Positions 6,001 to 53,959 of a stretch of 64,000 nt of DNA are shown in pieces. The stretch's first letter is position 1, and every line of letters starts with the position of its first letter. The notes beneath the pieces were generated by a model that saw only the letters and a program-made list of their open reading frames with translations, was not told the DNA's origin and did not search any database. Location: the NCBI GenBank assembly GCA_965202585.1, contig OZ241831.1, forward strand, positions 44,082,001-44,146,000. Reading direction: 5' to 3'. The DNA comes from Thalia democratica. Taxonomy: Eukaryota. The translations under genes were made by a program, and so were the position numbers.

Positions 6001-9000
6001 TTATTTTATTTTTCTGCTTCAAGTTCAACGCTCCCTTTTTACGTTGCTACGTGAACTGGTCGAAACGTATACTAATTTTAGTAACATAGTTATTTACATA
6101 TTTTTTTAAAAGGCAAACAAATCTAACGATTCTAATAAGACTGCTACTCGTAAAGCAAACTATTTCTGTAAAAAAAAAAAAACTCTTTTTGCACAATAAG
6201 CTAGTAAATAAAATTTTTATACTGTCACTAAAAATGAATAAATAAAAATTCGATTGTTTTTTTAATATTTTCGATACTTTTGTTAAATACAACTAATAAT
6301 ATAAAAAACATCCTAGATTGTTTTTTTAAATTCTTGCTTTATAACTTTAACCTTGTAAGTGAACTCAACTTAATTCAAACTTAAAATAATACAAAAACAA
6401 ATGACAAAGATGAAATAAGTCTAACAAAGCTGTAGAGTTCAATGCTGTAACCATTTAAAAGTACTAAAAAAACTAAATTTCATCTATGTATTAAACTAGA
6501 CAAATGTTTTTTGTCTTACATAAATAAAAAAATCATCAACACTAACGTGGGAGACACGCTGAGCCCCATGTCGTTCATGCTCTCGCTCAGCTCAGTGACG
6601 GCACTTGCGGGTTTCATCTGATCGTCGCTGAGCGCCATGGCCAGGTCCGCGTCCGCTATGACCGACTGCGCGATGTCCCTGAGCGCCTGCTCGATCATCG
6701 CCTTGTCGTCCCTCAGCTTGGCCATCGTCTCCACGTCCTCTTCCTCCTCTTCCACCCGGGTAGATTCCTGTGCGTTGGTTGTGACAATAAAAAAACGAAT
6801 GAACAAAAAGGTCAGTTCAAACAAGTTCTTATTCAAATGGCACATTTTCCATTAAATAATATTTTTTAACTTTTGTAATGTTACGTGTTGTTTATTGCTT
6901 GTTGAAACTTTTTGCTGCATCAGCTTTTGGATCAAGAAGATTTATGGTCAATTTAAGCAAGGGCTTTCTGAAGTGGGCGATATTACCCTTATGGTGGAGG
7001 TATTGACTATTAAAGGCGTTAACAACTAGTACGGGGTGAAAAATTAAAAGGGTATTTCAATAGCAAAGGAGCCAATATTTTTGTATCTTTTGCAAAAAAA
7101 GAACATAAAAATGATTTTGTGAAACTCTTCTGTGAGCGAGTAATTATTTGTACGCTGGTTATAAACTGAATCCGTAAATTTCTCAACGTAAACACTTACT
7201 TGCGGAATGGACAGGTTGAGTTGGTTGATGGTGCAGTCTTTTTCGTCGTTCTGTTTCTGAAGTCTCTCTGTGGCGACAGTCAGTTCGTTGATCTTGGCGT
7301 TCAGCGCTGCTTTCTCCGTATCGAAATCAGATTGCATCTGTAGCATTTCTTTCACCTGTTTAATATACAAGATTTAATAGATTGTGAAATTTATTACATT
7401 TTTTTAAACAATTGTTTTCATAAGTTAAAACGTAACTTTTAAACACGTTTCATATTTGATGATATTGTGCTATTTACAACAATGAAAAAAAAAGGAAGTC
7501 TGTCTAAATACTTTTCCAAATACAAAATAGAGCTTTTGTACCAAAGTCAAACGTCTTGTAATTAAACTTCGAAAATTTAAATACACATAAGACAAAAAAA
7601 TAATATGTAAAATTACTTTAAATCTTCTACTACCCCTTTTTTTTATTTACACTTAAAAAAAAACACGCCTTTTCTCTCAGCTGATCTTCGACTCCGCTCT
7701 TCTCTCCTCTTTCTTTCTCAAGAGAGACTTTAGCGGACGAGTCCTGAACATTCTGATTGGCTCCGAGGTTCAAGCAGGCGGCGTGAAGTTGACGGGCACC
7801 TCTCTGTGTAAATACACAATTGTAACACAGACATATATCTAACTGTTTGTATGGTATACGAAAAGAAGAATGCGCTTATTTGAACCTTTTGGATGAAAAT
7901 ATAAAAACATATGCTGTAGCGAAGTTTAAAAGCACAATCTTCTTACTACTTTTTAACAATTTAAAAGACTATCAATGTTATCTAAGTTAGATATATTGCA
8001 TTTTGTATACATTAGATTGGTGGCGTATTTAGAGTAAAGGTAGGCATGGTAAGCAACTAAATACAAGTAGTAAATTGCAAAATCCCACCTGGACATCATT
8101 GATAGCTTCGTTCAGGTTGGTCTGAGTGCTGGACTTGAGATCGGTGAATCCCCTTCTGATCTGCACCACTGCCCTCCACAATGCCAGCAATCTGCTGTGC
8201 TCGTCACCAAAGTACGTGCTAAAGTTCTATGAAAGAAGTTATATAAATTTAAAACTTCAAATGTGTCTGTCCTACTATGTTCTTATACAATAAATAGGGA
8301 CAGTAAGTTATACAGTTTTTAGTTAGATCAAACAGAACTATTTTCTAAATAATGTTTACGCCTACTATAAATCTGTACACGAAAACGAACTAAATTTTAT
8401 GGTTTCTGGCTACTTTAAGTAAAATTGTTCAACTTACCACGTGAGTTTAGTAAAAAACATTTTTTGTCAGGAAAAAAATTTAAACAAAATTATTTTGAGT
8501 TAACCGAAACTACTTTTGTAGACTAAAATTTTATATTTATTATTATTACGTCATACAAAATCCTCACCTCTTGTTCTTCCTTCCACTGCTGCTCCGTCGT
8601 CTTCAGTTTCTCCTGAACGTCTTCGAAGTCCTGCTGGCACTTTTGCAGGTCGTCGGTCACTTTCTTCATGTCCTCACTCATCTTCTCGTTGCCCTCGTTC
8701 GCCGCTTGCAGTTGTTCGCGCAACATCGCGTTCACCTCCGCAAGACTTTCGGCTCTGAAGAAAAAAAATACAGTTTGTCTACTGTTAGGTACTTTGAAAC
8801 CTTAAACACCATTTGAATTGTGGAAACGGATCACAAATGCACGGAGCGTCACTTTTGCATTAAATTGTTTCAATTAATTTAGTAATTTAAAACTTTTTAT
8901 GTTTGAAATGTTGTTTTTAAATAAATAAATACTTTCGTACGAACCATAACTGTATATATATTTTATTATATTAAACTTGGAAATAAGTTTCGGTTATTGC

Positions 9001-32834: not shown

Positions 32835-33583
32835 TTATTCATAATCAAAAAAGAATCCTTTGGCAACATTAGCTGAATCAGATTTGAAAGTCAAGTAGAT
32901 CCAGTTAGATGAAGCTTCAAAGTGGTAACGTTGGTTGTATGTATCGAAAATATTGGCAATTTGAGCATCTGACTCTGAATCTCCGTCAAATACCTACAAA
33001 ATAAGTATTGTTTTTTTTTTTTGAAAATTTTTATTGAGGCTTATTTTGTTTTGAAGTTTTGGTATTGCAAATCAATTACTAATATTTAATAAACTATGTT
33101 TTTTAAGTTTACTTTTTATAATAAGCATTGCAAGTAAAAATCTTAAGTAAAGTATTTTTACAGAAAAAACCATCTCTATTCAATATTTAATTTAAATTGT
33201 AAACAAACATACTTGCAAATAATCGTTGCTTTCGATTCCGTCAACATTCAAGTCGATTATGACTGGACTTCCGTCTTCAGCGTGTACAAGCCAGTTGCAA
33301 TCGAGGTAATTGTCGTAGTTTTCAGGATAATTTGGTGAGAACATTCTTCCACTGTCGTGCAAATGGTATCCACTGCAAGCTGCATACAAACTCATCAGTC
33401 TTCCTTCCTTTGTAACGGTACGAACCACTGGAAAAACAAGTTAAATAATTTATATCAGAACAGATATTGACAAATGTAAGATAAATTCTAATATGAACGA
33501 TCATACTTACTTTTAGTTTGTGGAGAAGCCATAGTTGCTGAGATGACAGCGAAAGCCAAAGTAACGAAGAAAACAAGTTTCAT
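32835..33583 (-). CDS. Secreted single-CUB-domain protein, copy 1 (148 aa)
   Basis: Exons 33511-33583, 33213-33427, 32835-32993. Signal peptide MKLVFFVTLAFAVISATMA. CUB motifs CSG...SGRMFSPNYPENY...DCNWLV...DYLQVFDG...LTFKSD...KGFFFDY. Confidence 0.92.
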
Positions 33584-33884
33584 TTTGATAAATTTGTCTA
33601 TAAAATTTTATTGTTTACATATGTTTACTTTTTAACATGAATAGTAAAGCTCAAAAAATATAAATTAAATAAATGTTACTTTAAGTACTATTGCTCAATA
33701 ACTTGTTTCATTTAACAAAAAAAAAGGTTCATTTTACTACAAATAATTGTTTTATCAGTCTTTAATAAAGTTTAATAAAATAAACTTAAGTTAAGGCTTT
33801 AAAGTTTTCAAACTTGTTATAAACCATTAAATTTCTAATTAGCTGTAGTGAGCTAGTTATGGTTGTTTTGTACAAACACGCGTC

Positions 33885-33972
33885 TTATATATATTACTTG
33901 TATCATGTGTGAAATTTGCAATATGGTTAGTATGAAATGGTTGCAACACATTTCAAACCAATTGCTTAATTT
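33885..33972 (-). promoter_or_regulatory. CUB proximal promoter module + TATA (copy 1; paralogs ~42064-42150, ~50346-50430)
   Basis: Reverse complement of 33919-33946 is 26/28 identical to 35823-35850. TATATAA lies downstream on the minus strand. Confidence 0.6.
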
Positions 33973-35795
33973 TATAGAGTTATGAAACAGTTTTTCTATA
34001 AGAAATCATTTTAAATATTAAAAGTAATTTGTTATACGAACCTTTTTAGATTAAGTAAAAAACGTTTTAAGTTTCTAGCTTGCTAGTTCAATAACAATGA
34101 TTTAATTGAAAACGGTTGAATCTATTGTGTTCAACATGTGTTCAGCATGTGTCTGTTAGGCTGTAAAATATTAAAAACAACCTTTTTTAATTTTGTAGTA
34201 CTTATTTATTCACAACGAAAACTCATGTTAAGTTAGTATTACAACAGTTAAAAATAATTAAAATTATAAAATGCTCAAAGTTGTTTTTCATAAAGTAAAA
34301 GTTTAAGGTAGGATAACCTTAAAAGTTTGGTTTATTTTTATTTTAAATGAATACAATAAACCTGCAAAAAAAATTAAAAGTGTTGTAAAGACTTTTAAAT
34401 TTTCTATCAACGAACTAACTTAAACAACTGAATTATCAGAATAAACCTTTAATATTTTTTGTTTCTATTTCTTTTTTCTGACAAGTACGTGTGTATAGTC
34501 AAGTAATTTGAATTATATACAGTCTAGTGTCTATAATAAAACACAAAAACCTCAGCTTTGTATATCTTGTGCTTAACTGATTTTGAAATATAACATGAAA
34601 TCAATTATCATATTTTTCAACTAGAACTTTTGTTACAAAAAACAAAGTGTTATTGAATGTGTTGTAAGGTTTTTGTGTCATAAAAAGAAAAGTACTTTAT
34701 TTCTTTTTTCAATACAAACAAAATACTTACCGGTAAAAATTATAACTTAAGAAACTTAGCAACCCTAGATTGATGTTAGTCATGTGAGTTTTACATGCTT
34801 ATTTAAGTTGACAAACTTGTATGAAAAAGATTTAGTCTCGTCTAAAAATACTTTAAAACTATTACCTATTATATTTTAGCTTTAAGTTCTAAATTTACTT
34901 GGTGGGTTTAATTGTATGTAGTTGTAGTTTAAAATCTTTAATAGAGTTACGTGTACGAACAATTATACTGTCATGAGCATCTTAGTATCTTAGTAATCTT
35001 TCTAAGTTTTCAATTCTAATGTCATACATTCAATCGGTTTACAAAATTAACACAATTTTGAAACATTTAACTGTTATTATGTAAATCATAGTGGTTTTGA
35101 AAAGAGGTTCTTTCTGCTAATTAAAAAAAAAACGTTTAAGTCCAAATTGTACTAACCACTTTTAAAGTTTTTCTGATCCCAGAAATGATAACTTTGAATA
35201 ATACTTTATGTTCGTAACACCAATCAATTAACAAGTTTGTTTGTTGAACGTATTTTATGAAAAAAAAAGTTATTACTGAAAAAGGATTTTACTTATAACA
35301 AACTGATTAGATAACCTTTGATATCTTCTAATATTAAACTAAAATCAAGAGAATTATAAACAAAACTAAATACTTTTATTAGTAAAGCTTAACCATTTAC
35401 AAAACTAAGACTTTGTTTTGCGTTATGATAAGTGAAGCTTAGAACAAAGCTTAATTAAAGTTTAGGAGTTACTAGTGTTAAAAACATGTTTTACTTATTG
35501 ATTCCTATGTACTAATGTTATGGAAGTTAACATGAAGTTTAGAATCAAACTAATTTAATTGAGTGTTTATTTTATATTCTTGTTTATAAACTGAACACTC
35601 GAATACCTTAAAAAAATGATAATAAAAACAGAATTAAAATAATTGTTAATTATTTTTTCATACTATTATCGTTTTCAAACGGTATTAAAAAAACATGTGT
35701 TCATCAGGTCAATATTGCTCTAAAAATACCATTAGAACAAACAACTTAAAGCTTTTAGTAATTACTGGTCGCATTATTTACAATAATACGTGTTG

Positions 35796-35886
35796 AAATT
35801 AAGCAACTGGTGTTTACGTGTTTTGCAACCATTTCTTAGTAACCATATTGTAGTTTTCACATTATGTTGAAAAGCGGTATATATAA
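35796..35886 (+). promoter_or_regulatory. CUB proximal promoter module + TATA (copy 2; paralogs ~43965-44054, ~52939-53030)
   Basis: TTGCAACCATTTCTTAGTAACCATATTG followed by TATATATAA at 35878-35886, ~165 bp upstream of the ATG. Confidence 0.6.
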
Positions 35887-36048
35887 CCATCATCGTAAGT
35901 TAAGTTTACACTTTATTGTTTAATACCATTAAACTTTATCTAGGTATAAATCAAACAAGGTTTTGAGTAGTAGTACCTAAAGTACATTCAAACTCAACAT
36001 AAACTAAGTATATGAAACAATAAAATTTTATAGACAAATCTATTAAAA

Positions 36049-36764
36049 ATGAAACTTGTTTTCTTCGTTACTTTGGCTTTAGCTGTTCTCTCAGCAACTA
36101 TGGTTTCTCCGCAAACTAAAAGTAAGTTTAATAGTTGATATTAACATTTATCTTACATTTGTCAATATATGTTCTTTGATATAATACTTAACATGTTTTT
36201 CCAGTGGTTCGCACCGTTACAAAGGAAGGAAGATTGATGAGTTTGTATGCAGCTTGCAGTGGATATCACTTGCACGACAGTGGAAGAATGTTCTCACCAA
36301 ATTATCCTGAAAACTACGACAATTACCTCGATTGCAACTGGCTTGTACACGCTGAAGACGGAAGTCCAGTCATAATCGACTTGAACGTTGACGGAATTGA
36401 AAGCAACGATTATTTGCAAGTATGTTTGTTTGCAATTTAAATTAAATATTGAATAGAAATAGGGTTTCCACATATATTTCTTTTTTAAACATTTTAGTTG
36501 AAATTTCTAACAAAAACTAACAACGTTTTGAAAATAAGACTGCGCTATTAAACCCTTAAAATCAAATTAGTTTGAATATATAGATAAAAATTCTTTATTT
36601 TGTAGGTATTTGACGGAGATTCAGAGTCAGATGCTCAAATTGCCAATATTTTCGATACATACAACCAACGTTACCACTTTGAAGCTTCATCTAACTGGAT
36701 CTACTTGACTTTCAAATCTGATTCAGCTAATGTTGCCAAGGGATTCTATTTTGATTATGAATAG
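36049..36764 (+). CDS. Secreted single-CUB-domain protein, copy 2 (148 aa)
   Basis: Exons 36049-36121, 36205-36419, 36606-36764, GT-AG introns, TAG stop. Confidence 0.92.
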
Positions 36765-37250
36765 ATTAGTATGTATAATTTTTTTTTTGCGTAAATAAAA
36801 TTGTTTATAACGTTTACAAAATTTATTATTATTGATTAAACTACAATAAAATTAATTGTACTTATGCTTTAAAACTTAAGGTTGTCAATAAATTTTGAAC
36901 AACTTGTTTAAAATAATTACAAGAGTGAAAATTTTAAATTATATAAAATTAGAGAAGTAAGTTTGTTTTAAATAAAAAGATTAAAAGATATACTAACTAG
37001 TAAAAAAAGTATATTTATAACAATTTTGTTAAAGCCCAGCACTTTTATAAATATATAATCCAACTTATAGTTTTTGTATCAATTAGGCAAAGTACTTTAG
37101 ACATAAGTATTATAACACTTTACATTTGTTCTCTTAATTTGAAATTACAGTCTTTAAATATTAATTTTTTAAATTTTCGTTTTAAAATTATTTTATATTT
37201 TAACTTTTGTATTTAAACCTTTTAAACCGAAGAGCTACGTTACTAGTTTA

Positions 37251-37309
37251 TATACTTTGGTAGCGTAAGCTACCAAAGTAAGCTACCAAAGTATATTTGG
37301 TAGCGTAAC
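37251..37309. repeat. Short fold-back/tandem cluster of TTTGGTAGC / GCTACCAAAG units
   Basis: TACTTTGGTAGC-GTAA-GCTACCAAAGTA (12-bp stem) plus two further copies. Confidence 0.8.
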
Positions 37310-40138
37310 TGTTGTATTTGGTGCACTACTATAAAAATTCTAACTAACAAAAATTTAAATTAAATTTACAAGTTTAAAGGTCCACAAATTAAAAAGCAAT
37401 GTATGCTTGAAAAAAATAGCGTACGTAGGCCTAATTTGTACCTATAAATTTGTTTTTTGAATGTTTTAATAAAAAAATACTTAAATAGTTTAATTGAGTT
37501 TGCAGAAAACTTTCAAAAACATTCCATTAATAAAATTAAAAAACTATACTTGAGTTATCTGTAATTAGAGCAGTAAGTTGCAGACTTGATGTTATTGTTA
37601 ACTATGTGGAAATGTTAATTTTATGAAAAAAATGTATAACTTTTTTGACACTTTACATAGTAATAAACTTAATAATATCTTTTATAACAAAGAATATTTT
37701 TTTTCAAACAATAAGTAATGTAAAGAGGTCAATCAACTTCTCTTAGAACGTTTTAGTTAAGTTACACATAATATATAGAATTTAGTTTACGACTACTTCA
37801 CTACTAAAAGCTTTTATTGTAACAATTCGTATAAATTTTAAAATACCTCTAACTTTTTATGGAAACATGACAATTCAAACTTTAACAATTCAAACTTATA
37901 TAGATTTATCAAAAATACTTAAAACCAAAAGAAATATGAACTTGAAGGTCTAACTAAGTGAACTTTGATGGTAAAAAAATATTCATTAAAAGAAATTAGT
38001 AAATATTTGTTCGAAATATATAATTTTTTAAATTTCAAAACATAAATTTCTAGAACTTAAGTCGTTCTGAACTTTTTTATTTTTTAAAAGTTTGAAATTA
38101 AACCTCAATTACAAAAACAACAAATAAGAAATATGTTTTGTTATAAGGTCTTACTAAACTGCGGTACAGTTGATACAACCTAATACTTTGTATAAAAAAA
38201 AGCTACATAACAAAACAATTTTAAATATAGATTTTTTAAAGGTTTTGTTATAAAAAACTCTAGTTGATATCATATTTACATCTAGTTAAGAGAAAAAAAT
38301 ACCGAAATATAAATTTTATAACATTTTTTGTGCATGTTGAACTTACCAAAATATTCTTTACTTTGTTCTTGTAAAATGCCAGATATAACTAAATAATTAC
38401 AGCTAACTTATTATCAGTTAGTTTAGTTTATTAAGCTTCATTGTTTTAGAGCAAAACATTATTTAAATGTTAATACTTTTCAAACTCAACTAAAGACTTT
38501 TGTTTCTAATTTTTCCGATTAAAAGTAAAAGAAACATTATGACTTTCAGACACTAGTTTTAACAAAATCTTATTTTTTATTTAATTTAATAATGTAGTAA
38601 TCATTCAAGTACTAAAGAAATGATTAAGTAAGAAAACAGCGGAGTTCAACCAACCAATTAAGTATAGAACCTTCGTATAAAGCAAACTCGTTTTAAAAAA
38701 GAAAACTTTTAGTTATTGCAGTGACCCGTTGTAGATAAAACTGTTATATAGATCTTTTAAAATCTTAAGTAACATTAGTATATTTTTAAACACTTAAGCA
38801 TAGTTTGTAAATATAACTTATGGTGAAACGATTAAACATCTTTTTTTTTTTTGCTCGATTAATTTAATAAACTTATTAATCAGACTTTTATTATCAAAAT
38901 TAAAAATTTTTATTTATGCACTTAGTCTACTTTAAATCAAACATAGCTATAATATTAATATGGTTTTTATCATAAATAGATATCTAATATATTTTTCGAT
39001 ATTTTAATGTGTTATTGCTTTTGTATTCGTATTTTGTTATATGAAAATTATTATTATGACACCTAAATATTTAACTTTTACCTAACTTTATAAATTATGT
39101 AGTAAATAAGTTTTAATGTACTACTATTTTAACTAAGCTTACTACTAATAAATCATATTGAATAAATCTTAAACAATCTTCAAAATGCAGCACTACAAAG
39201 TTAGATAACTCAAAAAGTCAAATTAGAATACTGCAACACAGGACCTGGTTTAAAACACATGTTTGTAACACTAACAGAGGGTAGTTTGTTCAAAGTGCGT
39301 AGCTAAGTGGTAGATTACTGTACAACCTCTGAAAATTAAACAAGCTAATGATTAAAATAAAACTTTAGGTTTAAGATTAATAAATAGTAAAACCTAACAC
39401 TATTAACACAATTTAACTAAATTCTAAAAAAAAATGTTTAGTTTTTAATCATACTTTACGCATATTTCTTAATACACAAGTTAAATTCAGCTTGCTTAGT
39501 AAGTACTTATGACTTCAAAGGACTTAAGTTGAATGTATGAGCTGGTATTTTTTTTAAATTAATTACATTAAGACAACCCTAATAAAATCAAGAAATGCCA
39601 ATGTGATTACTTTCTAGTTTCTATTAAACTAAGATAAAATTTAGAAAGAAAACACGATATACGACTAGCTCTATGGCCATAAGAATTTACGTCGTAACTA
39701 ATGTTTCATTAATATCATCCAACTTTGTTTAATATTTAAAATATTACATAACAAAAAAGTTTGTTAAATACTTGTTCGTTTCTTTGACTAGTTATATAAA
39801 AGTGTTTATTCATCATTATCATTGAAATCGATAAAAGTACTATATATAATATTAAAACCTGATCCACATAACTTTGAATCACTATAATTTAAACAACTTA
39901 GCAAAAACTGTAGGTCACTTAATTTTGTCAACTATTGTACTCTTAAGGTGTAATGGCGAAACAAATATTATAACTATACACGTTATTAGTTCAAATTTGA
40001 AACAGTATTTGCTGTAATCAATATTTAAACTACAATAATAAAACTTAACTACTTTAACATACCTATCATTTAAACACAATTAAAAAATGATAACCTTATA
40101 TATTAAGAAAATTTGTATGACATTTAATACTCCTAGAA

Positions 40139-40523
40139 TAGGGCTGGGCAACATTTTCAGTCGGCGGGCCAGAATAGAAAAAAATATTTCTTAGCATGCC
40201 GGAGCATTTTAATTTTAATTAAATTACCAAAATTACTTTTCGACGAAATTACTTATTCGTTTCGACAATTTTTTACTATATCCAGTGCGAGCTTAGAATT
40301 TCAGGTAAATTGTACTTAAAGCCTTTTATTTATTTTTCTTTGAAATAAAATAAATTAGTTTGAGTTTTAATTCTTTTTTTTAGAAGACCATATTTACAAA
40401 CTCCCAGGTTGCAGTATTATATTTCGCAGGCCGGATTTTACATAAATATAAAAGCATTAGCAGGTCAATTATTTTATTCCAGAAGGCGAATAAGGACAGT
40501 GGGCCGTACGTTGTCCTTCCATG
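40139..40523. mobile_element. Degenerate hAT-type MITE (second family)
   Basis: Ends TAGGGCTGGGCAAC / GTTGTCCTTCCATG, imperfect 8-bp flanks TCCTAGAA/TACTATAA. Inverted paralog at 47562-47957. Confidence 0.6.
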
Positions 40524-41028
40524 TACTATAACTTTGAAACTAAGTAAATTGCTATGCTAAAAAAAAGTTGTGTAAGGTTTAACTAAAACTGATCGTATGT
40601 TGAAAACTAATGATCTAACTACAATTTAACTGAAAGTGTCAATCAAGTTAAGTACTTTTAAAAACGAAATGAAGCTTAAAAACAAGTGCTCAGAAGTATT
40701 CATTTAAAACAATTCCTGTTAAGATAAAAATATTTAAATCAAATTTTTGCATAAACACACAAGCTAGTTTTGCAAGTAAAATTATTCTTCATATTCGAGT
40801 TCAAACACTTCTATAGACGTAATTTACTTATAAAATAAGTAGATTACGACTAACTTTTAAAATATTATGTATAGTTTAATAGTTTGTAAACTTTGTTTGT
40901 TTTTAAGCTTTTTTTCGCAAATCTTTTATTTTAATTTATAAGTATATCTAATTTTATTATACTGCAAGCATTATAAAAAGTTTTCACTTTTATTCACGCT
41001 AATTGAAAAAAAAACTTTACACTTTAAT

Positions 41029-41758
41029 TTATTCATAATCAAAATAGAATCCCTTGGCAACATTAGCTGAATCAGATTTGAAAGTCAAGTAGATCCAGTT
41101 AGATGAAGCTTCAAAGTGGTAACGTTGGTTGTATGTATCGAAAATATTGGCAATTTGAGCATCTGACTCTGAATCTCCATCAAATACCTACAAAATAAGT
41201 TTTTTTTTTGGGAATTTTTATTGAGGCTTATTTTGTTTTGAAGTTTTGGTATTGCAAATTTTATTTAATAAAATATTTTTTTTAAGTTTACTTTTTATAA
41301 TAAGCATTGCAAGTAAAAATCTTAAGTAATGTACTTTTACAGAAAAAACTTTCTAAATTTAAAATTTATTTTAAATTGCAAATAAACGTACTTGCAAATA
41401 ATCGTTGCTTTCAATTCCGTCAACGTTCAAGTCGATTATGACTGGACTTCCGTCTTCAGCGTGTACAAGCCAGTTGCAATCGAGGTAATTGTCGTAGTTT
41501 TCAGGATAATTTGGTGAGAACATTCTTCCACTGTCGTGCAAATGGTATCCACTGCAAGCTGCATACAAACTCATCAATCTTCCTTCCTTTGTAACGGTAC
41601 GAACCACTGGAAAACAAGTTAAATAATTTATATCAGGATAGATAGAAAAAATAGAATAAATTTTAATATGAACTATTAAACTTACTTTTAGTTTGTGGAG
41701 AAGCCATAGTTGCTGAGATGACAGCTAAAGCCAAAGTAACGAAGAAAACATGTTTCAT
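41029..41758 (-). CDS. Secreted single-CUB-domain protein, copy 3 (148 aa)
   Basis: Exons 41686-41758, 41392-41606, 41029-41187. N-terminus MKHVFF. Confidence 0.92.
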
Positions 41759-44216
41759 TTTGATAAATTTGTCTATAAAATTTTATTGTTTACATATGTT
41801 TTTACTTTTTAACATGAATAGTAAAGCTCAAAAATTATAAATTAAATAAGTCTTACTTTATGTACTATTGCTCAATAACTTGTTTCATTTAACTTTGAAA
41901 ACCAGTTTCATTTTACTACAAATAATTGTTTTATCAGTCTTTAATAAAGTTTAATAAAATAAACTTAAGTTAAGGCTTTAAAGTTTTCAAACTTGTTATA
42001 AACCAATAACTTTAAAATTAGCTGTAGTGAGCTAGTTATGGTTGTTTTGTACAAACACGCGTCTTATATACATTACTTGTATCATGTGTGAAATTTGCAA
42101 TATGGTTAATATGAAATGGTTGCAACACACTTATAAACCAGTTGCTTAATTTTATAGAGTTATGAAACAATTTTTCTATAAGAAATTTACTATTTGTTAT
42201 AAGAACATATTTAGATTAAGTAAAAATACGTTTTAAGTTTCTAGCTTGCTGGTTCAATAACAATGATTTAATTGAAAACGGTTGAATCTAATGTGTTCAA
42301 CTTAATCTGCAAACATGTGTCTGTTAGGCTGTAAAATATTAAAAACAACCTTTTTTAATTTTGTAAAACTAATTTATTCACAACGAAAACTCATATTAAG
42401 TTAGTATTACAACAGTTAAAAATAGTTAAAATTATAAAATGTTCAAAGTGGTTTTTTATAAAGTAAAAGTTTAAGGTAGGATAACCTTAAAAGTTTGGTT
42501 TATTTTTATTTTAAATGAATACAATAAACTTGCAAAAAAAAATAAAAGTGTTGTAAAGACTTTTAAATTTTCTATTAACGAACTAACTTAAACAACTGAA
42601 TTATCAGAATAAACCTTTAATATTTTTTGTTTCTATTTCTTTTTTTTTGACAAATACGTGTGTATAGTCAAGTAATTTGAGTAATGTACATTCTAATGTC
42701 TATAATAAAACACAATAACCTCAGCTTTATATATCTTGTGCTTAACTGATTTTTAAATATAACATGAAATCAATTATTATATTTTTCAACTAGAACTTTT
42801 GTTACAAAAAACAAAGTGTTATTGAATAATTTTTAAGGTTGTTATTGCATAAAAAGAAAAGTACTTTATTTCTTTTTTCAATACAAACAAAATACTTACC
42901 GGTAGAAATTATAACTTAAGAAACTTAGCAACCCTAGATTGATGTTAGTCATGTGAATTTTATATGCTTATTTAACTTGACAAACTTGTATGAAAAAGAT
43001 TTAGTCTCGTCTAAAAATACTTAAAAACTATTACCTATTATATTTTAGCTTTTAGTTCTAAATTTACTTGGTGGGTTTAATTGTATGAAGTTGTAGTTTG
43101 AAATCTTTAATAAAGTTACATTTACAAACAATTATACTGTCATGAATATCTTACTATGTTATTAATCGTTCTAAGTTTTCAATTCTAATGTCATACATAC
43201 CATCGGTTTACAAAATTAACAGAATTTTGAAACATTTAACTGTTATTATGTAAATCATAGTGGTTTTGAAAAGAGGTTCTTTCTGCTAATTAAAAAAAAA
43301 CCATTAAGTCCAAATTGTACTAACTACTTTTAAAGTTTTTCTGATCCCAGAACTGATAACTTTAAATAATACTTTAAGTTCGTAACACCAATCAATTAAC
43401 AAGTTTGTTTGTAAAACGTATTTTATGAAAAAAAAAGTTATTACTGAAAAAGGAATTTACTTATAACAAACTGATTAGATAACCTTTGATATCTTCTAAA
43501 ATTACACTAAAATCAAGAGAATTATAAACAAAACTAAATACTTTTATTAGTAAAGCTTAACCATTTACAAAACTAAGACTTTGTTTTGCGTTATGATAAG
43601 TGAAGCTTAGAACAAAGCTTTATTAAAGATTAGGAATTACTAGTGACAAAAACATGTTTTACTTATTAATTCCTATGTACTAATGTTATGTAAGTTAACA
43701 TGAAGTTTAGAATCAAACTAATTTAATTGAGTGTTTATTTTATATTCTTGTTTATAAACTGAACACTCGAATACCTTAAAAAAATGATAATAAAAACAGA
43801 ATTAAAATAAATGTTAATTATTTTTTCATACTATTATCGTTTTCAAACGGTATTAAAAAAACATGTGTTCATCAGGTCAATATTGCTCTAAAAATACCAT
43901 TAGAACAAACAACTTAAAGCTTTTAGTAATTACTGGTGGCATTATTTACAATAATACGTGTTGAAATTAAGCAACTGGTGTTTACGTGTTTTGCAACCAT
44001 TTCTTAGTAACCATATTGAAGTTTTCACATTATGTTGAAAAGCGGTATATATAACCATCATCGTAAGTTAAGTTTACACTTTATTGTTTAATACCATTAA
44101 ACTTTATCTAGGTATAAATCAAACAAGGTTTTGAGTAGTAGTACCTAAAGTACATTCAAACTCAACATAAACTAAGTATATGAAACAATAAAATTTTATA
44201 GACAAATCTATTAAAA

Positions 44217-45246
44217 ATGAAACTTGTTTTCTTCGTTACTTTGGCTTTCGCTGTTCTCTCAGCAACTATGGCTTCTCCACAAACTAAAAGTAAGTTTAAT
44301 AGTTGATATTAACATTTATCTTACATTTGTCAATATATGTTCTTTGATATAATACTTAACATGTTTTTCCAGTGGTTCGCACCGTTACAAAGGAAGGAAG
44401 ATTGATGAGTTTGTATGCAGCTTGCAGTGGATACCATTTGCACGACAGTGGAAGAATGTTTTCACCAAATTATCCTGAAAACTACGACAATTACCTCGAT
44501 TGCAACTGGCTTGTACACGCTGAAGACGGAAGTCCAGTCATAATCGACTTGAATGTTGACGGAATCGAAAGCAACGATTATTTGCAAGTATGTTTGTTTG
44601 CAATTTTAGCCTGTCATAAATTTTTAGATAAAATTAAGAAATATTAATAACTTTTCAACTCGAATAAATATATCAGGAGCTAAACTTGATCAAAAATTAG
44701 TTTTAAAACTTGTTTTATATTTAGTTTGTCTTGTTTTAAAACAAACAATATTTTGATAGTTATTAACTTTTTATATTGATTTTTAGTATTTAATTTTAAA
44801 AAGAACTTAACTGTAGCTAAGGATTTTATCAATCTTATATATTAAATTATTTAAACATTGTTTTATAAAAGATTTTTTGAATTAATCTGTTTGTATTTGT
44901 TTTCTCAGATTTAAATTGACAACACAAATATTTGCACTTAAAAAGCATACTTTGTGTAACAAATTGTAAAAAGTAAAGTATTAAATCATATAAAGTTTTT
45001 GATTAGCTCCATTAGTAAATAGTTATGTATCAAGTAGTAAGCATAAAGTTTAAGTAAAATATATATTCAAAGGGATTTATTTTTAAGGTTTTTGACGGAG
45101 ATTCAGAATCAGATGCTCAAATTGCCAATATTTTTGATACATACAACCAACGTTACCACTTTGAAGCTTCATCTAACTGGATTTACTTGACTTTCAAATC
45201 TGATTCAGCTAATGTTGCCAAGGGATTCTTTTTTGATTATGAATAA
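44217..45246 (+). CDS. Secreted single-CUB-domain protein, copy 4 (148 aa; long intron 2)
   Basis: Exons 44217-44289, 44373-44587, 45088-45246. Confidence 0.9.
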
Positions 45247-45879
45247 ACTTGTCGTTATTTTTTCTTGAAAATAAAGTTATATAAACTTAATCGCAAATTT
45301 TGTCTTCATGTATAAATAGTTATCTCTAAGTAATATGTCAGTTCAACAATTTTTATGTACTAATAGCATAATAATAAAAACGGAGCAAACTACGATTCAT
45401 ACTCTGAAAATTCTTAATCTAAAAACTTTGTGCTGTTGTTGACCAATTTTACTGATAAAAAGTTCATTTAACAGTTTTTATGTTTCATAGTTTAAATTAG
45501 TCGAACCTTCTTTTATTTTTTTTAGTAATTATGAATTATGTTTAAGGATATGAACCATCGTTTTTTTTTAAAGATAATGAATTGTTGGAACTTAAGTTTT
45601 CGTAACTTTAAATTATCATTTAACAACAAAAACAAAAAAAAATGAAACGATAAATTCTGTACATATTTGTGTAAAAATTGATCACGAGTTTAAGTTTTAA
45701 TTTAATAACATTAAAAGCTAAAGGTTTTTTTTTTTAAGAAAAAAAAAACTTATAAAATAAATATTTATAGCAATTTTTTTTGAAGCCTACTACTTCATAT
45801 AAAATTTTTATATTTATTATTAACATGACAAAATTTGCCTTATTTGTGTAGTTTAAACGTAAAGTTTGTTAGTAGCTGT

Positions 45880-45925
45880 CAAATTTGCACGAGGGGACAA
45901 AATTTTGTCCCCTCGTGCAAATTTG
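45880..45925. repeat. Perfect 46-bp palindrome followed by degenerate TCGTGCA repeats
   Basis: CAAATTTGCACGAGGGGACAAAA|TTTTGTCCCCTCGTGCAAATTTG, no loop. Confidence 0.9.
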
Positions 45926-46170
45926 TATTCGTGCAAAAGTATCTTCGTACAATTTAGTCCACTCGTGCAGTTTTGAAGCATTTCAAAAATTTGTAATTCT
46001 ACTTTTTGCAAACTAGTAGAAAAACATATATATGTTGAAGCATTTCTACTTAAAACTTAAACAATTTTTTTTTAATTGTCAAATTTATTCATTTAATCAT
46101 CAACCAAATGAGTAAGTAAGAAAAAAGCGGAGTTGGAAAAACCAACTTAGTATAAAACCTTAGTATAAAG

Positions 46171-46521
46171 CAGGGGTCGGCAGCCGTCTGTTACTCGCGG
46201 GCCAATTTTTTCAGAAAAAAACTGCTCACGGGCCGCACTATTTAGAATAAAATCTTCGAGGACCGTAGTTATTTAAAAATAGCTACAGTAATTACTAAAA
46301 AAATAACATTTTATACTAAAAATATAAAAAAATTAATAGTAAAATAACACATTTAAACAGTATTTATTAAACTAAAAGCCTAGTTGTAAGTTTTTTTTGA
46401 AAAACCTTTTATCTTTAAGTTGTTTTAAAACTTGATTTTTGGCTAAAAAGTACCTCGCGGGCTGCAGATATTGGCGTTGAGGGCCGCAACTGGCCCGCGG
46501 GCCGCAGTTTGCCGACCCCTG
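46171..46521. mobile_element. hAT-type MITE, 351 bp
   Basis: TIR CAGGGGTCGGCA...TGCCGACCCCTG, perfect 8-bp TSD GTATAAAG. Empty paralogous site at 38675-38682. Confidence 0.92.
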
Positions 46522-47561
46522 GTATAAAGAAAACTCATTTTCGTATAAAACTTAAGTTACTACAATGACCGGTTGTAAATAAAACCTTTACATAATTCTC
46601 ATGAATTTTAAAGTAACATAAGTAAACAATTTTTTTTACATTTAAAATTTTTTTTTGAACATAAATTATGGTGAAACAATGAAACAATTAACACATCAAT
46701 ATTTTGATTATTTTAATGAAATAAATTATTAAACTTTTTCTATTGATTATTTTAATGATTTGATAAATTTTTAGTCAAATATAAATAAAGATACAATCAA
46801 AATTTTATTGAAAAACAAATATTTAATTTTTTCATCAATATTTTTATGTGCTATTGCTTCTGTATTTAGTTGTAATTGAAAACTTTACTATGATTAAATT
46901 TTCTTAAAAAATTTTGTCTAAGCTAACAAATACATTTTTAATTAAAATATGTCAAAAGAGTAAAAGCAATCAAAACATTAAAAAAATTAAAATATGAAAT
47001 TGAATGTAATGAAAAAAAATTATTATAAAATAACTATTTTTACATTTACCTTAATCGCTAAATACCGACTTTTACTAAGATATGTATTAACAATAAAAAG
47101 TCTAATCCAATTCGCTTTTTATTAAACATTAGCTTTTTGATTTATTTTCTGTTGTAAGAATTCTTGAAATTAACGTTGGTAATATTATGTAAAAATTAAA
47201 AGTTAATTTTCAAAACCTAGTTGTAAAAAACTATAAGTTAGCTTTGATATCTTGTACAAGTTTTAAAATAGCTTTGAAAGCTACAGATCAATGAGAAAAA
47301 CTTATAACACGGTTTAAAAACAAAAAAAAGTTTAATAGTCAAAAAACATACTTATCGAACTATAGTTGAGATAAAAGGTTTAACGACAACGAATTTTCAT
47401 TAATTATTTACTGTATTATACTACATTGTATTAAAAAAACTTATTGCGATGGAAAATTTTAATTAAGTTGTGAATGGATTATTAGTTTATTTTATACAGA
47501 TTAATTAGCCTTAAACCTTACTTTTTTTTCTAGAAATTTACTTAGTTACATGGTTATAAAA

Positions 47562-47957
47562 TATGGATGGACAACGTACTGCCCGCTGTCCGTTTCTGGC
47601 TGCTGTAGCGAAAATGCATTGCTCGCCAATGTTTTTTAATTTAAGTATAATTTACCCCTCAAAATATAAAACTGCAGCTCGCAAGCATGTAAATATGGCA
47701 AAAAAATTTTAAACTTTTATTAGATTTTTTTTAATTTGAAGTAAAAACCAAAAAAAGGCCTTAAATGCAATTTATGTAAGACTTTAAGCTTACACTATAT
47801 ATAGTAATAAGAAGTGTTGTAGAACAAGTATTATTGCCGAAATGAACTTGATAATTGAGTAACTTTCGTAATTTAAGTGAAGTTAAAATGCTCCGGCCTG
47901 CTAAGAAATAATTTTTTGCCAGTCTGGACTGCTGACTGAAAATGTTTCCCAACCATA
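47562..47957. mobile_element. Degenerate hAT-type MITE, inverted paralog of 40139-40523
   Basis: The reverse complement of its right end (tatggttgggaaacattttcagtcagcagtccaga...gccggagcatttt) aligns to 40139-40210. Confidence 0.6.
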
Positions 47958-49340
47958 TTCTAAAAGTGTTAAATGTTATAAAATTTTTTCTTAAGATCTA
48001 AGGTTATCATGGTAAACTATATTACAATGATAGGTAAATAATATAGTTAAATTTTATTATTTTAACTTAAATAATAATTACAGTACATATTATATTTAAT
48101 TTAAACTAATAATATGTACAGTATTAATTCTTGTTTTGTCATTATACTTTAAGAGTACAATAATTGGCAAAGTTAAGTGATATATAGCTTTTGCTAAGTT
48201 GTTTAAAAAATAGTGATTCAAAGTTATGTGCATTAGATTTTAATAACATTTATTAAATTTTTTTCAGTTTTAATAAAAATTATGAACAAACATTTATACA
48301 ACAATATTTCAGATAGTAAATAAGTATATAACAAACGTTGTTTGTAGTATAATGTTTTTAAATATTAAACAAAGCTTGATGAGATTAATAAAACATTAAA
48401 TACGACGTACAATTTTGTGGTTATAGAGGTGGTCGTCATCAAGTTTTCTTTTGAAACTTTATTTCATTTTAATGGCAACAACAAAGTAAGCACATTGACA
48501 GATTTCAATGTGGGTGTCTAAATGTAATTAATATTTTATCAAAAAAGATGTTTATAAAAAAACAAGCTTATACTTCTCAACTTAATCCTTTGAGTTTATA
48601 AATACTTACTAAAAAATCTAAATTTAACTTAAGTGTTGAAAAAATTTCGTATAAGTATAAATAAGTACTAAGATAATGGAATTTTAGCTTAGTTGTGTTT
48701 AATAGGTTGATTTTTTATTATTCATTGACTTTAAAGTAAATTTTGTTTACCTTTGATTCGTTTAAATTTTCAGATTTTTTACAGTATGCCGTCTTTTTGA
48801 ACAAACTACCCTCTGTTAGTGTTACAAACATGTGTTTTAAACCAGTTCCTGTGTTGCAGTATTGTAATTTGACTTTTTGAGTTATTGAATTTTATAGTGC
48901 TGCAAGTTTCAGACTGCTTAGGGTTTATTAAAAATAAGCTAAATACTTCGGTGTCATCATAAGATTTAACATATTATTTTTTATTTATAATTTATCAACT
49001 TAAAAATAAGATGTTGGTAGATAGAATTTTGTTTCTTTTAAAGTCTTCTAACAATTTATATTTGTATTTACAGAAAGTTTAAGGCTGGTTTTTTTATCAC
49101 TAATTTCACTTCACTAAAAAGCATTAAACGTTTAATCATCAATGAAGTTACTATGATAACATTATGTTTAGTTCAACAGTATGTTTATAATTTTTTTGTG
49201 TTTTAAATTTTTTTTGTGACAATCCTTAATCTTAAAGCATAGATATAATAAACTTTATTGTAGTGTAAACAGTAATAATAAGTATTGTAAACGTTATAAA
49301 CAATTTTATTCACGCTAATAAAAAAAAATTACAAATTTAT

Positions 49341-50086
49341 TTATTCATAATCAAAATAGAATCCCTTGGCAACATTAGCTGAATCAGATTTGAAAGTCAA
49401 GTAGATCCAGTTAGATGAAGCTTCAAAGTGGTAACGTTGGTTGTATGTATCAAAAATATTGGCAACTTGAGCATCTGACTCTGAATCTCCGTCAAATACC
49501 TAAAAAGTTTTTTGTTTTTGTTTTATTAATTTTTACTGAGGCTTATTTGGTTTAGAAATTTTGACATTGCAAACCAATTACTAATATTTAATGTAAACGA
49601 TATTTAAAAAAATTGCTTTTGTTGTTAAAAATTGAAAGTAAAAATCGTAAATAAAAGACTTTTAAAGTAAAATTATCTTCATTTAATATTTATTTCAAAT
49701 TGCAAACAAACATACTTGCAAATAATCGTTGCTTTCGATTCCGTCAACATTCAAGTCGATTATGACTGGACTTCCGTCTTCAGCGTGTACAAGCCAGTTG
49801 CAATCGAGGTAATTGTCGTAGTTTTCAGGATAATTTGGTGAGAACATTCTTCCACTGTCGTGCAAATGGTATCCACTACAAGCTGCATACAAACTCATCA
49901 GTCTTCCTTCCTTTGTAACGGTACGAACCACTTGAAAAACATATTAAATATTTTATTCAAGAACAAATCTTGACAAATGTAAGATAAATGTTAATATCAA
50001 CTATTAAACTTACTTTTAGTTTGTGGAGAAGCCATAGTTGCTGAGATGACAGCGAAAGCCAAAGTGACGAAGAAAACAAGTTTCAT
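49341..50086 (-). CDS. Secreted single-CUB-domain protein, copy 5 (148 aa)
   Basis: Exons 50014-50086, 49716-49930, 49341-49499. AAG acceptor on exon 2. I->V in QVAN. Confidence 0.92.
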
Positions 50087-52036
50087 TTTGTTAAATTTGT
50101 CTATAAAATTTAATTTCTTACATATGTTAACTTTTTAACATGAATAGTAAAGCTCAAAAGTTATAACTTAAATAATTTTTTCTTAAAGTACTATTGCTCA
50201 ATAATTTGTTTCATTCAACAAAGAAAACAAGTTTCATTTTACTCCGAATAATTGTTTTATCAGTCTTTAATAAAGTTTAAGAAAAAAAAAAAACTTTGAA
50301 ATTAGTTGTTGTGAGCTAGTTATGGTTGTTTTGTTCAAACACGCGTCTTATATATGTTACTTGTATGTGAAATTTGCAATATGGTTAAGAAGAAATGGTA
50401 GCAACAATTTTAAAAACCAATTGCAAAATTTTATAGAGTTATGAAACAATTTTTCTAATAGAAGTTATTGTGAACATTAAAAGTAATTTGTTACACGAAT
50501 ATTTTTAGATTTTGTAAAGAAAGTTTTAAGTTTCTGGCTTGCTGGATAAAAAAACCATGATTTTATTGAAAACTGTTGAATGTAATATGTTCAGTTTAAT
50601 TTGCAAACAAGCGTCCGTTAGGCTGTAAAGTATTAATAACAACCTTTTTTAACTATGAAGTTACTATTTAATCACAACGAAAATTAATGTTAAGTTATTA
50701 TTACAACATCTAAAAATAGCTAAAATTGAAAATGTTCAAAGTTTTATTTATAAAGTAAAAGTTTAATTTAGTTTAAGCTTAAAATGTTTTATTTTTCTAA
50801 TTTTAAATGAATACAAAAAACTTGCAAAAGATTTCTAAATGTTGTAAAGAGTTTTGAATTTTCTATTAATAAATTAACTTAGACAACTGAATTATCAGAA
50901 CAAACCTTTAATAATACTTTTTTCTAACTCATACTTTTAGACAAACAGGCATGTATAGTCAAGTAGTTTGATTATGCATATTCTAGATAATAAAACAGAA
51001 TTAACTCAGATTCGTATATCTTATGGTAAACTGATTTTTAAAGACAACTTGAAACTAGTTATGTTTTTCAACTAGAACTTTCCTTACAAATTTACATTAG
51101 GTTAAAAAGTGTTATTGGTTGTGCTTTGAGGTTGTTGTTGCATTAAAAAAATACTTAACTTCTTTCTTCATTACAAACAAAATGTTTACCGGTATATATA
51201 ATAAATTATAACTTAAAAAAACTAAACAACCTTAGATTGATGTAAGTTTTGTGGATTTTATATGCTTATTAAAGTTTATAAACTAGTATGAAAAAGATTT
51301 ATTCTCGTCTAAATATATTTAAACACTAAAATATACTTAACATCTAATTACTTAAATACCTATTAGAATTTAGTTTTTAGTTTTAATTTTACTTGATAGG
51401 TTTAATTGTATGTAGTTCTAATTCGAAATCGTTGATAAGTTAATGAATAAAATTCTTGTTAGTTACATTAACAAACAATTGTACTATCATGGTATGTTAA
51501 TATCTTATCAATTGTTTTAAGTTTTCAATTCTAATGTCATACACTCAATCGGTTTAAAAAATTAACACACTTAATAAATTTAACTGTTATTATGTAAATC
51601 ATAGTGGTTTTGAAAAGTGGTTCTTTCTGTTAATTTAAAAAAAACGTTTAAGTCCAAATTTTACTAACCACTTTAAAAGTTTTTCTGATCTGAGTATTTA
51701 TAACTTTGATTAATATTTTAAGTTTCTAACACCAATGAACTAACTAGTTTGTTTGTTAAATTTTTTCAATGAAAAAAAATAGTTATTACTGTAGAAGGAA
51801 TTTACTAATACCCAAGGATTAGATAAAACCTTTGATATCTTCTAAAACTGAACTAAAATCAAGAGAAATTAAACAAAACTAAATACTGTTACCAATAATG
51901 CTTAATTATTTACAAAACCAAAATTTAGTTTTGCGTCTTGATATGAGAAGGTTAAAACAAAGCTTAATTGAAGTTTAGGAGTTACTATTGGTATGAAAAA
52001 TCCTTTACTTATTGAAAATCCTATACACTAATGTTA

Positions 52037-52662
52037 ATTAGACAATTTCAGATTGAGAATTTCATTAAACACAGTGTTTCTTGCAAACGCAATGATCACG
52101 ATTTAACAACTCTATAAAATAAGATAGACAAAGCTATATATACTACTAATAGATGTTACTAATCAACACTAGTCAACACTAACTATACACTTATTAGAAC
52201 TGATTAAATTAAATGAGCTTGCTAAATTAACAAAAAGATTCCAAAATACTTAATGGCCAATTAAGTAAAAAAAATGATTCGATAAAAACAAAAAATATAA
52301 GTAAATAAATAAATAACTAGAAAATACAAACACAATAATAATACAATAAGTTAAAAAATACAAGTACGAATGTAACATAATTATGAAATTTGTAAATACG
52401 GACATGGCAATGTTATGATTTTAAACAAAATTTAGCGAAGTGTCTGCATTTGCCAATTAAGTCAGTTGTGGAGTTGAGCATCTAGTAGTAGTATATATAG
52501 CTTTGTCTATCTTACTTTATAGAGTTTTTAAATCATGATCATTGCGTTTGCATGAAACACTGTGTAGAATAAAAACTCTCAATTTGAAACTGTTAATTAA
52601 AATTTATTTGCTCCTTATCAGTTGAGCTCTTTATTGTGGAATGATAACTTACTATAGAGTTA
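52037..52662. mobile_element. Inverted-repeat-plus-tail insertion with 14-bp TSD (same Penelope-like family, degenerate hammerhead)
   Basis: Imperfect ~125-bp inverted arms (~52034-52160 / ~52472-52600), 62-bp tail containing CTCCT..CAGTTGAG, direct repeat ATACACTAATGTTA at 52023-52036 and 52663-52676. Absent from the paralogous spacers (35501-35545, 43670-43710). Confidence 0.65.
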
Positions 52663-53245
52663 ATACACTAATGTTATACAAATTATCAGGAAGTTTAGAA
52701 AGAAAATAGTTTTTTTGAGAGGCTTTTTCTTAAAAGGTTGTTTAGAAATTAAAAAAATTATTAAAACAAAAAAAGAATTAAAATCATGAAAAATTTCTTT
52801 TTTATACATTTTTCATTTTTCATAGGTTTCCAAAAACAATGTAATCATCAAGTCAATATTGCTCTAAAAATACCTTCAAAACAAACAAAACAAAGTTTTT
52901 AGTAATTACTGGTTGCAATATTTACAATATAACGTCAGAAAATTGAGCAACTGGTGTTTACGTGTTTTGCAACCATTTCCCTGGAAACCATATTGTAGTT
53001 TTCACATTACATAGATGTCTGGTATATAAATCTATCATTTTAATTCAATTTACACTTTATCTTTTAAAACATTCGAATTTATGCATGTTTGAATAAAACA
53101 AGGTTTTGAGTGTTAGTACTAAAAGTAGCATTTATTTAAATATACAAATATTTAATAAAGTTATATTTTTTGAGCGTTACTATTTAAGTAAGTGTTAATA
53201 ACTATGATAAGTAAATAATTACATTTTATAGACAAATTTATCAAA

Positions 53246-53959
53246 ATGAAACTTGTTTTCTTCGTTACTTTGGCTTTCGCTGTCATCTCAGCAACTATGG
53301 CTTCTCCTCAAACTAAAAGTAAGTTTAATAATTATATTAAAATTTATTCTCTTTTTTCTATCTATTCTTATATAAAATACTTTACATGCTTTTCCAGTGG
53401 TTCGTACCGTTACAAAGGAAGGAAGACTGATGAGTTTGTATGCAGCTTGCAGTGGATACCACTTACACGACAGTGGAAGAATGTTCTCACCAAATTATCC
53501 TGAAAACTACGACAATTACCTCGACTGCAACTGGCTTGTACATGCTGAGGACGGAAGTCCAGTCATAATCGACTTGAACGTTGACGGAATTGAAAGCAAC
53601 GATTATTTGCAAGTATGTTTGTTTGCAATTTGAAATAAATATGGAAAAGAGATAGGGTTTCTACATATATTTCATTTTTTTTAAACATTTTAGTTGAAAT
53701 GTATAACAAAAATTAACAACGTTTTGAAAATAAAACTGCACTATCAAACCATTAAAATCAAATTAGTTTAAATATATAGATAAAATTCTTTATTTTGTAG
53801 GTATTTGACGGAGATTCAGAATCAGATGCTCAAATTGCCAATATTTTCGATACATACAACCAACGTTACCACTTTGAAGCTTCATCTAACTGGATCTACT
53901 TGACTTTCAAATCTGATTCAGCTAATGTTGCCAAAGGATTCTTTTTTGATTATGAATAA
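53246..53959 (+). CDS. Secreted single-CUB-domain protein, copy 6 (148 aa)
   Basis: Exons 53246-53318, 53398-53612, 53801-53959. Protein reads identical to copy 1, with synonymous differences. Confidence 0.92.

Follow-up and report, generated by a model that had tools for sequence, protein, structure and literature searches.

A head-to-head array of six genes for a secreted single-CUB protein in Thalia democratica: duplication, gene conversion and constraint on the coding sequence

A window of 64,000 nucleotides (nt) from Thalia democratica (assembly GCA_965202585.1, contig OZ241831.1, positions 44,082,001 to 44,146,000 of the forward strand) contains six genes, designated g1 to g6, for a small secreted protein that consists of a signal peptide and one CUB domain. 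This six-copy array is a real, lineage-restricted multigene family. As a whole, we read it as a lineage-restricted family of the Ca2+-binding CUB subtype that has been amplified, subjected to gene conversion and kept under purifying selection, and that would yield a large amount of secreted product; we give this reading a probability of about 0.6. All positions are those of the window.

Array layout and constraint on the coding sequence

By BLAST, the three exons of g6 match exactly six full three-exon sets in the window, and neither this search nor a relaxed tblastn search of the window returned a further or decayed CUB copy. The strands of g1 to g6 follow a strict -/+ -/+ -/+ order, which amounts to three divergent (head-to-head) pairs. 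In each copy, an open coding sequence of 447 nt for 148 amino acids is split into exons of 73, 215 and 159 nt by introns that begin with GT and end with AG (Table 1). The G+C content is about 25% in the array, and 22-42% over 2-kb blocks of the whole window. No open reading frame of 45 or more amino acids is present in the spacer of pair 1.

The proteins encoded by g1 and g6 are identical. Only two differences occur in the mature part of the six products, I108V (in g5) and F144Y (in g2, g3 and g5), while the signal peptides differ at residues 3, 11, 14 and 19, that of g2 being the most altered of the six, with A19V at the predicted -1 site. The preliminary description of this DNA had reported six intact genes in this order, with these exon sizes, spacers of about 2.5, 2.5 and 3.2 kb, no pseudogenised copy and only an I/V and an F/Y change in the mature region in spite of visibly diverged introns and flanks, and had concluded that one invariant secreted product is maintained. 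All of these numbers match the present gene models (the identity of intron 2, for example, is 56-92%), and the conclusion agrees with the distribution of substitutions. The variable sites of the mature region comprise 18 synonymous and 2 nonsynonymous ones, as compared to 3 and 4, respectively, in the 24 codons of the signal peptide, and the pairwise ratio of nonsynonymous to synonymous divergence (dN/dS) of the mature part is 0-0.06, with dS values of 0.04-0.23. Since gene conversion alone would not sort changes by their coding effect, this distribution demonstrates purifying selection on the mature protein, which purges nearly all amino-acid changes there, while the signal peptide drifts. 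An array of diversifying recognition genes is ruled out by the same dN/dS values.

Relatives of the genes are found in the open ocean. A word-based homologue search returned open-reading-frame fragments of exon 2 on ENA marine metagenome contigs only, from Tara Oceans (PRJEB4352) and no fewer than three further assemblies, and a scan of Joint Genome Institute (JGI) metagenomes with exon 2 gave no relative. The 11 environmental contigs that were fetched from ENA and compared have, where they are long enough, the same three exons, GT/AG borders and an intact frame. Their exons are 96-97% identical to those of the window, with dN/dS of about 0.03-0.1, and their introns mostly 50-85%. The environmental coding sequences interleave with the six window copies, and contig L003 differs from g3 at 2 of 345 positions, fewer than any window paralogue does. 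A more distant copy is represented by contig L001 (dS 0.21-0.27), and contig L002 together with a P0164 contig (the L002 cluster) represents a 79%-identical paralogue, seen in exon 2, in the same ocean sample as close copies. The family thus has at least one further diverged branch outside the window. Three of the contigs continue into neighbouring DNA: the adjoining sequence of L004 shares 89% identity with the left flank of g1, that of L009 resembles the right flank of g6 at 71-76%, and that of L003 resembles the minus-type spacer at 80%. These matches indicate that DNA corresponding to the ends of the array, at the least, exists in nature. Whichever the origin of the environmental contigs, the coding sequence is, in this comparison, far more conserved than the surrounding DNA.

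It is also conceivable that the protein is a major, hitherto unrecognised building block of the feeding or housing matrix that a pelagic tunicate secretes, which would cross-link or coat the mucus net, the house or the tunic in a Ca2+-dependent manner and whose coding sequence would be almost frozen across ocean populations. The exons differ by 0.6-4% where the introns differ by 15-50%, and on such a reading the synonymous sites would therefore be constrained too, owing either to very high expression or to continual exon-limited conversion in a family of more than six copies. We consider this an improbable account.

Duplication history, exchange between copies and surroundings

Outside the exons, the identity between copies ranges from about 95% down to unalignable. 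In the 400 nt upstream of the ATG, the minus-strand genes are 89-95% alike and g2 and g4 99%, g6 is 80% identical to g2 and g4, and minus and plus genes share 63-72%; intron 2 also sorts mostly by strand. Pairs 1 and 2 are collinear, with 94.8% identity over 3.6 kb, a stretch that starts at the minus-gene stop codon, crosses the spacer and ends with exon 2 of the plus gene, and pair 3 is collinear with both, spacer included, at about 80% identity. Inside a pair, the inverted homology consists of the transcription unit and about 50-100 nt upstream of the ATG (only about 50 nt in pair 1), and the 400 nt downstream of the genes do not align between copies. An inverted duplication followed by triplication of the divergent pair, as put forward in the preliminary description, is borne out by this strand-wise grouping and by the collinearity of pairs and spacers. 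An ancestral gene unit of about 0.9 kb was thus first duplicated in inverted orientation to give a divergent pair, and this pair, together with about 2.5 kb of spacer and a tail (a unit of 8.2 kb), was then copied twice.

Several later changes are superimposed on this arrangement. An insertion of about 650 nt with 127-nt inverted arms of 89% identity accounts for the greater length of the pair 3 spacer; the insertion is single in the window and private to this pair. The second intron of g4 has 500 nt, compared to 186-219 nt in the other genes; it cannot be aligned with the other introns and is likewise single in the window. The two tail-to-tail regions are 64-73% similar and partly inverted relative to each other, and a 1.5-kb stretch of inverted homology between them (72.6%) may represent an old mobile element, or else a piece of the repeat unit that has been rearranged. 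Similar short open reading frames occur in the two versions of this stretch, and no Pfam family was matched by the small open reading frames of the tail regions. About 130-170 nt upstream of the minus-type ATGs, and of that of an environmental copy, the beginning of exon 1 (the ATG and first codons, followed by an early stop) is repeated over 21-22 nt; this repeat is either a remnant of a partial duplication or a short upstream open reading frame.

It is very unlikely that the copies are recent neutral duplicates, alike through youth and with no selection on dosage or protein. The near-identity of pairs 1 and 2, and that of g2 and g4 in the upstream region and intron 1 (99-100%), would fit such an origin, but dS reaches 0.23, and several copies have second introns and tails that share 56-72% identity with one another or cannot be aligned. 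Moreover, a ratio of about 3:1 in the opposite direction would be expected in place of 18 synonymous to 2 nonsynonymous sites (binomial tail about 1e-9), and the environmental copies show the same constraint. The least probable of the explanations considered is an assembly artefact, in which haplotypes or collapsed reads have been mistaken for tandem copies. Heterozygosity can be very high in tunicates, and the 5% divergence between pairs 1 and 2 is within the allelic range in some species. However, the window contains no runs of N, the divergence between copies amounts to 5-40% outside the exons, pair 3 stands about 20% apart and has an insertion of its own, and the long g4 intron is private. 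The low similarity and partial inversion of the tails also argue against an artefact, as does the single metagenome sample ERZ907909, in which three different gene versions are present.

The partitions of informative sites among the six copies switch along the gene. In the proximal promoter, g6 sides with the minus genes (101011; 16 of 27 informative upstream sites); in intron 1, g3 and g6 stand against the rest (110110); in intron 2, g2 groups with g6 (101110); and in exon 3 and just past it, g1, g4 and g6 fall together (100101). The four-gamete test is failed by 664 of 1653 pairs of informative sites, and the incompatibility of neighbouring sites is 0.269, as compared to 0.401 upon permutation, with none of 5000 permutations giving a value as low. 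The comparison of g2 and g4 illustrates the mosaic: intron 1 is identical and the upstream region 99% so, yet exons 2 and 3 differ at 9 of 345 positions and the second introns cannot be aligned. These patterns indicate that the six copies have exchanged sequence by gene conversion, opposite-strand copies included; the exchange has taken place between transcription units since the amplification, across strands as well as within them. The uniformity of the copies had previously been ascribed to maintained dosage. The invariant product on which that view was built stands, but the mosaic variants and the minus-type proximal promoter of g6 show that gene conversion has a share in the uniformity.

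The division of the upstream regions into two types raises the possibility of a regulatory division of labour, in which the same protein would be made in different tissues or stages from minus-type and plus-type promoters. The upstream 400 nt are 63-72% identical between strand types as opposed to 89-99% within them, the promoters of the two types show no relation beyond about 50-130 nt, the inverted homology inside the pairs ends about 50-100 nt upstream of the ATG, and the gain of a minus-type proximal promoter by g6 implies that promoters and gene bodies can be recombined. On the other hand, two expression programmes do not require three near-copies per promoter type, and the close identity of pairs 1 and 2 over the whole spacer looks like plain amplification. 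We regard this division as possible, if doubtful, and as a more serious contender than the matrix building block.

The array is flanked on the left by minus-strand coiled-coil exons with a sub-threshold match to Rootletin (30.9 bits, cut-off 36) and on the right by an exon with a sub-threshold match to PMP22/Claudin, which is consistent with the labels CROCC and TMEM47-like that the flanks had been given before. Two very different codon regimes adjoin here: the G+C content at third codon positions (GC3) is about 71% in the rootletin-like exons, in a background of 25% G+C, and about 38% in the CUB genes. No Rfam match was obtained over the whole window at E <=0.1. Three hammerhead-like cores (CTGANGA-stem-GAAA), detected by regular expression only, are located in the rootletin region, and the minimal-hammerhead expression found no such motif near the CUB genes.

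Table 1. Positions of the CUB genes, the intervening regions and other features of the window
Feature	Position	Strand	Details
g1	32835-33583	-	exons 33511-33583, 33213-33427, 32835-32993; 148 amino acids, signal peptide + CUB
Head-to-head spacer (ATG to ATG), pair 1	33584-36048		2465 nt
g2	36049-36764	+	exons 36049-36121, 36205-36419, 36606-36764; Y144
Tail-to-tail region 1	36765-41028		4264 nt
g3	41029-41758	-	exons 41686-41758, 41392-41606, 41029-41187; L3H, Y144
Head-to-head spacer (ATG to ATG), pair 2	41759-44216		2458 nt
g4	44217-45246	+	exons 44217-44289, 44373-44587, 45088-45246
Intron 2 of g4	44588-45087		500 nt
Tail-to-tail region 2	45247-49340		4094 nt
g5	49341-50086	-	exons 50014-50086, 49716-49930, 49341-49499; V108, Y144
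Head-to-head spacer (ATG to ATG), pair 3	50087-53245		3159 nt
Insertion in pair 3 spacer	52023-52676		inverted arms 52030-52155 vs 52604-52479
g6	53246-53959	+	exons 53246-53318, 53398-53612, 53801-53959
Copy of exon 1 start	50217-50237		upstream of g5; also upstream of g1 and g3, and at L003:1066-1087
Inverted homology between tails	39155-40661 (tail 1)		vs 48935-47431 (tail 2)
Short open reading frame, tail 1	39874-40017	+	
Short open reading frame, tail 2	48096-48233	-	
Rootletin-like exons	933-8735, 27928-28290	-	
Hammerhead-like core	285	-	
Hammerhead-like core	346	+	
Hammerhead-like core	17519	+	

The protein and its putative calcium site

The product has a signal-peptide-like N-terminus with a small-x-small site before S20, as read from the sequence. 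The mature product of about 129 amino acids is acidic (rich in Asp and Glu), contains no N-x-S/T sequon, and begins with a short flexible segment that is followed by a single CUB domain, the latter matched by Pfam CUB (PF00431) at residues 42-147 with E 6.4e-16 and 59.1 bits (cut-off 21.4), over profile positions 1-110 of 110. An alignment of 59 sequences (A1), consisting of the query and 58 CUB domains from HMMER matches, was used for the structure prediction and for the comparison of residues. The AlphaFold2 model obtained with A1 has an overall predicted local distance difference test (pLDDT) score of 85.8, with values above 95 for residues 41-148 and low confidence for residues 20-40. Foldseek against the PDB returned CUB domains only, the best being those of neuropilin a1/a2, TSG-6, PCPE-1, cubilin, C1r and MASP-1, with a probability of 1.0; the root-mean-square deviation to the neuropilin, TSG-6, PCPE-1 and cubilin domains is about 2 Å, and the template-modelling score normalized by target is at most 0.81. 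The PDB sequence search is in line with this, giving cubilin (CUB5-8, E 5.9e-22) and neuropilin-2 (E 7e-15), and also neuropilin-1, enteropeptidase, PCPE-1, C1s and MASP-2. The mature protein has only two cysteines, C42 and C68, both invariant in A1, which means that the first CUB disulfide (Cys1-Cys2) is present; the protein contains no further Cys for the second one (Cys3-Cys4), which is usual in CUB domains, though not obligatory.

The residues that define the Ca2+-binding CUB subtype are present by alignment, namely Y62, E90, D93, D135 and N138. In known CUB domains of this subtype, the site takes up Ca2+ and contacts a basic ligand residue, and in CUB1 of C1s the Ca2+- and lysine-binding residues are Glu45, Asp53, Asp98 and Ser100 (PMC4222235). 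Across the 59 CUB domains of A1, conservation is 90% or higher at the positions of Y62, D93 and D135, E90 lies under a consensus Glu, and in the HMMER alignments a Glu and an Asp of both neuropilin-2 a1 and cubilin fall opposite E90 and D93. Y62 and N138 are matched to Tyr17 and Asn101 of C1s, which we take to be further residues of that site. With moderate confidence, we propose that the CUB product binds Ca2+ and through this site holds a basic residue of a partner. The protein would then be a soluble, Ca2+-dependent binding module whose acidic Ca2+ site takes hold of a lysine or an arginine on an extracellular partner, a mode of binding known from the CUB domains of C1s, MASP, cubilin and neuropilin.

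Possible function and comparison with known systems

The six copies would serve to make a single invariant secreted product in large amounts, or to make it from promoters of two types, and the likely setting would be an abundant secretion, such as the feeding mucus or the matrix of the tunic or house. That the array exists for the output of a component of an abundant secretion is a suggestion that we make with low confidence. Some features bear on expression. A 33-nt block directly before the ATG is kept in all six genes and contains TTTTATAG followed by ACAAAT, which is plausible as a trans-splice or 5'-UTR (untranslated region) acceptor, and an AATAAA is kept 35-45 nt past the stop codon, also in all six. 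The effective number of codons (Nc) is 38-41, where GC3 would predict about 55; all Gly codons are GGA and all Gln codons CAA.

A number of observations weigh against the reading of an amplified, conserved family with a large secreted output. The codon bias is only a weak hint of high expression, being noisy for 148 codons and without a genome-wide reference, and transcription of the six genes is deduced from conservation only. An exact look-up of two of the 148-amino-acid products in a collection of 15 billion proteins gave no entry, and the word-based homologue search did not turn up a full-length spliced form. The environmental contigs may be either orthologues from close relatives or paralogues from the same species, which limits the argument from synonymous sites, and the sequence fits maintained dosage and a minus/plus division of promoters alike. 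As to the binding site, the E90-D93 loop lacks five residues relative to most CUB domains, and D93 is preceded by Asn where C1s has the ligand-contacting Tyr52. Together with the missing second disulfide, these differences suggest that the Ca2+/ligand site may be altered or lost. Several other CUB domains in A1 likewise have no second disulfide and the same short loop.

The designation of the array as an undescribed system in the preliminary description is overstated, as the family is lineage-restricted but its CUB domain is an ordinary one. The searches gave no close relative with a name, and the nearest matches listed are generic CUB domains at 28-38% identity. The best 150 HMMER matches listed from a search against 1.84 billion representatives are mostly multi-CUB giants at 24-38% identity, and a single-domain relative of 40-60% identity could rank below these 150. 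A feature search of the ESM Atlas returned generic CUB clusters only, and the literature gave nothing specific on single-CUB proteins of tunicates or of the endostyle. Small proteins consisting of a signal peptide and one CUB domain do exist, unstudied, in other invertebrates, as exemplified by a 142-amino-acid cluster representative in the AlphaFold DB. As it stands, the array is a tidy example of a common phenomenon, i.e., the tandem amplification of a small lineage-specific secreted protein based on a ubiquitous domain. It is also a compact natural case of concerted evolution of inverted and direct repeats under strong purifying selection. Should the product be abundant in a secretion, it would provide a simple, well-defined protein handle on the little-known biochemistry of the tunicate mucus filter, house or tunic, which is relevant to ocean carbon flux.

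The array protein shares its fold, its Pfam family and an aligned Tyr/Glu/Asp/Asp(/Asn) site with C1r/C1s, the MASPs, cubilin, neuropilin a1/a2, PCPE-1 and TSG-6. The Ca2+-binding CUB domains of that group are modules of large multidomain proteins, whereas the array CUB, at 25-35% identity, stands alone; it also differs from them in the second disulfide, the loop before D93 and the Asn at the position of Tyr52, as discussed above.

The spermadhesins (AQN/AWN/PSP-I/II and aSFP) of ungulate seminal plasma are likewise secreted proteins with one CUB domain only, and they are encoded by clustered paralogues in ungulates. A reproductive protein of this kind, i.e., a component of a gamete coat, of seminal fluid or of an egg coat, would have the same minimal build of a signal peptide and one CUB at 12-15 kDa. 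The spermadhesin structures 1spp and 1sfp rank 44 and 46 in Foldseek with 17% and 15% identity, however, which rules out kinship and leaves them as analogues; no spermadhesin appears in the PDB sequence search at E <=0.1. Spermadhesins have two disulfides and the array protein one, so that the disulfide pattern appears to differ. Spermadhesins occur in mammals only, and while the array copies are nearly identical, spermadhesin paralogues have come to differ in both sequence and ligand. Reproductive proteins typically diversify, while the array protein is frozen, and a reproductive role is accordingly a long shot, hardly more probable than neutral duplication.

A further comparison is with the oikosins, the house proteins of Oikopleura, about one-third of which derive from gene duplication and two of which, oik4 and oik6, carry CUB domains (PMC3390340). 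They are tunicate-specific secreted matrix proteins that are made in bulk, many of them in recently duplicated families, the likeness being drawn from literature descriptions only. Oikosin paralogues are described as diverged families, whereas the array specifies an invariant product. The layout of the array recalls the chorion gene pairs of silkmoths and the histone repeats, in which tandem divergent pairs homogenized by conversion yield a bulk product. In those systems a pair encodes two different proteins from a short common promoter, while in the array a pair encodes one protein and has a spacer of 2.5-3.2 kb with unrelated sides. Tandem arrays homogenized by conversion are well known, and what is noteworthy in the present one is the triple head-to-head layout, the frozen coding sequence next to fast-evolving introns, and the presence of the genes in the open ocean.

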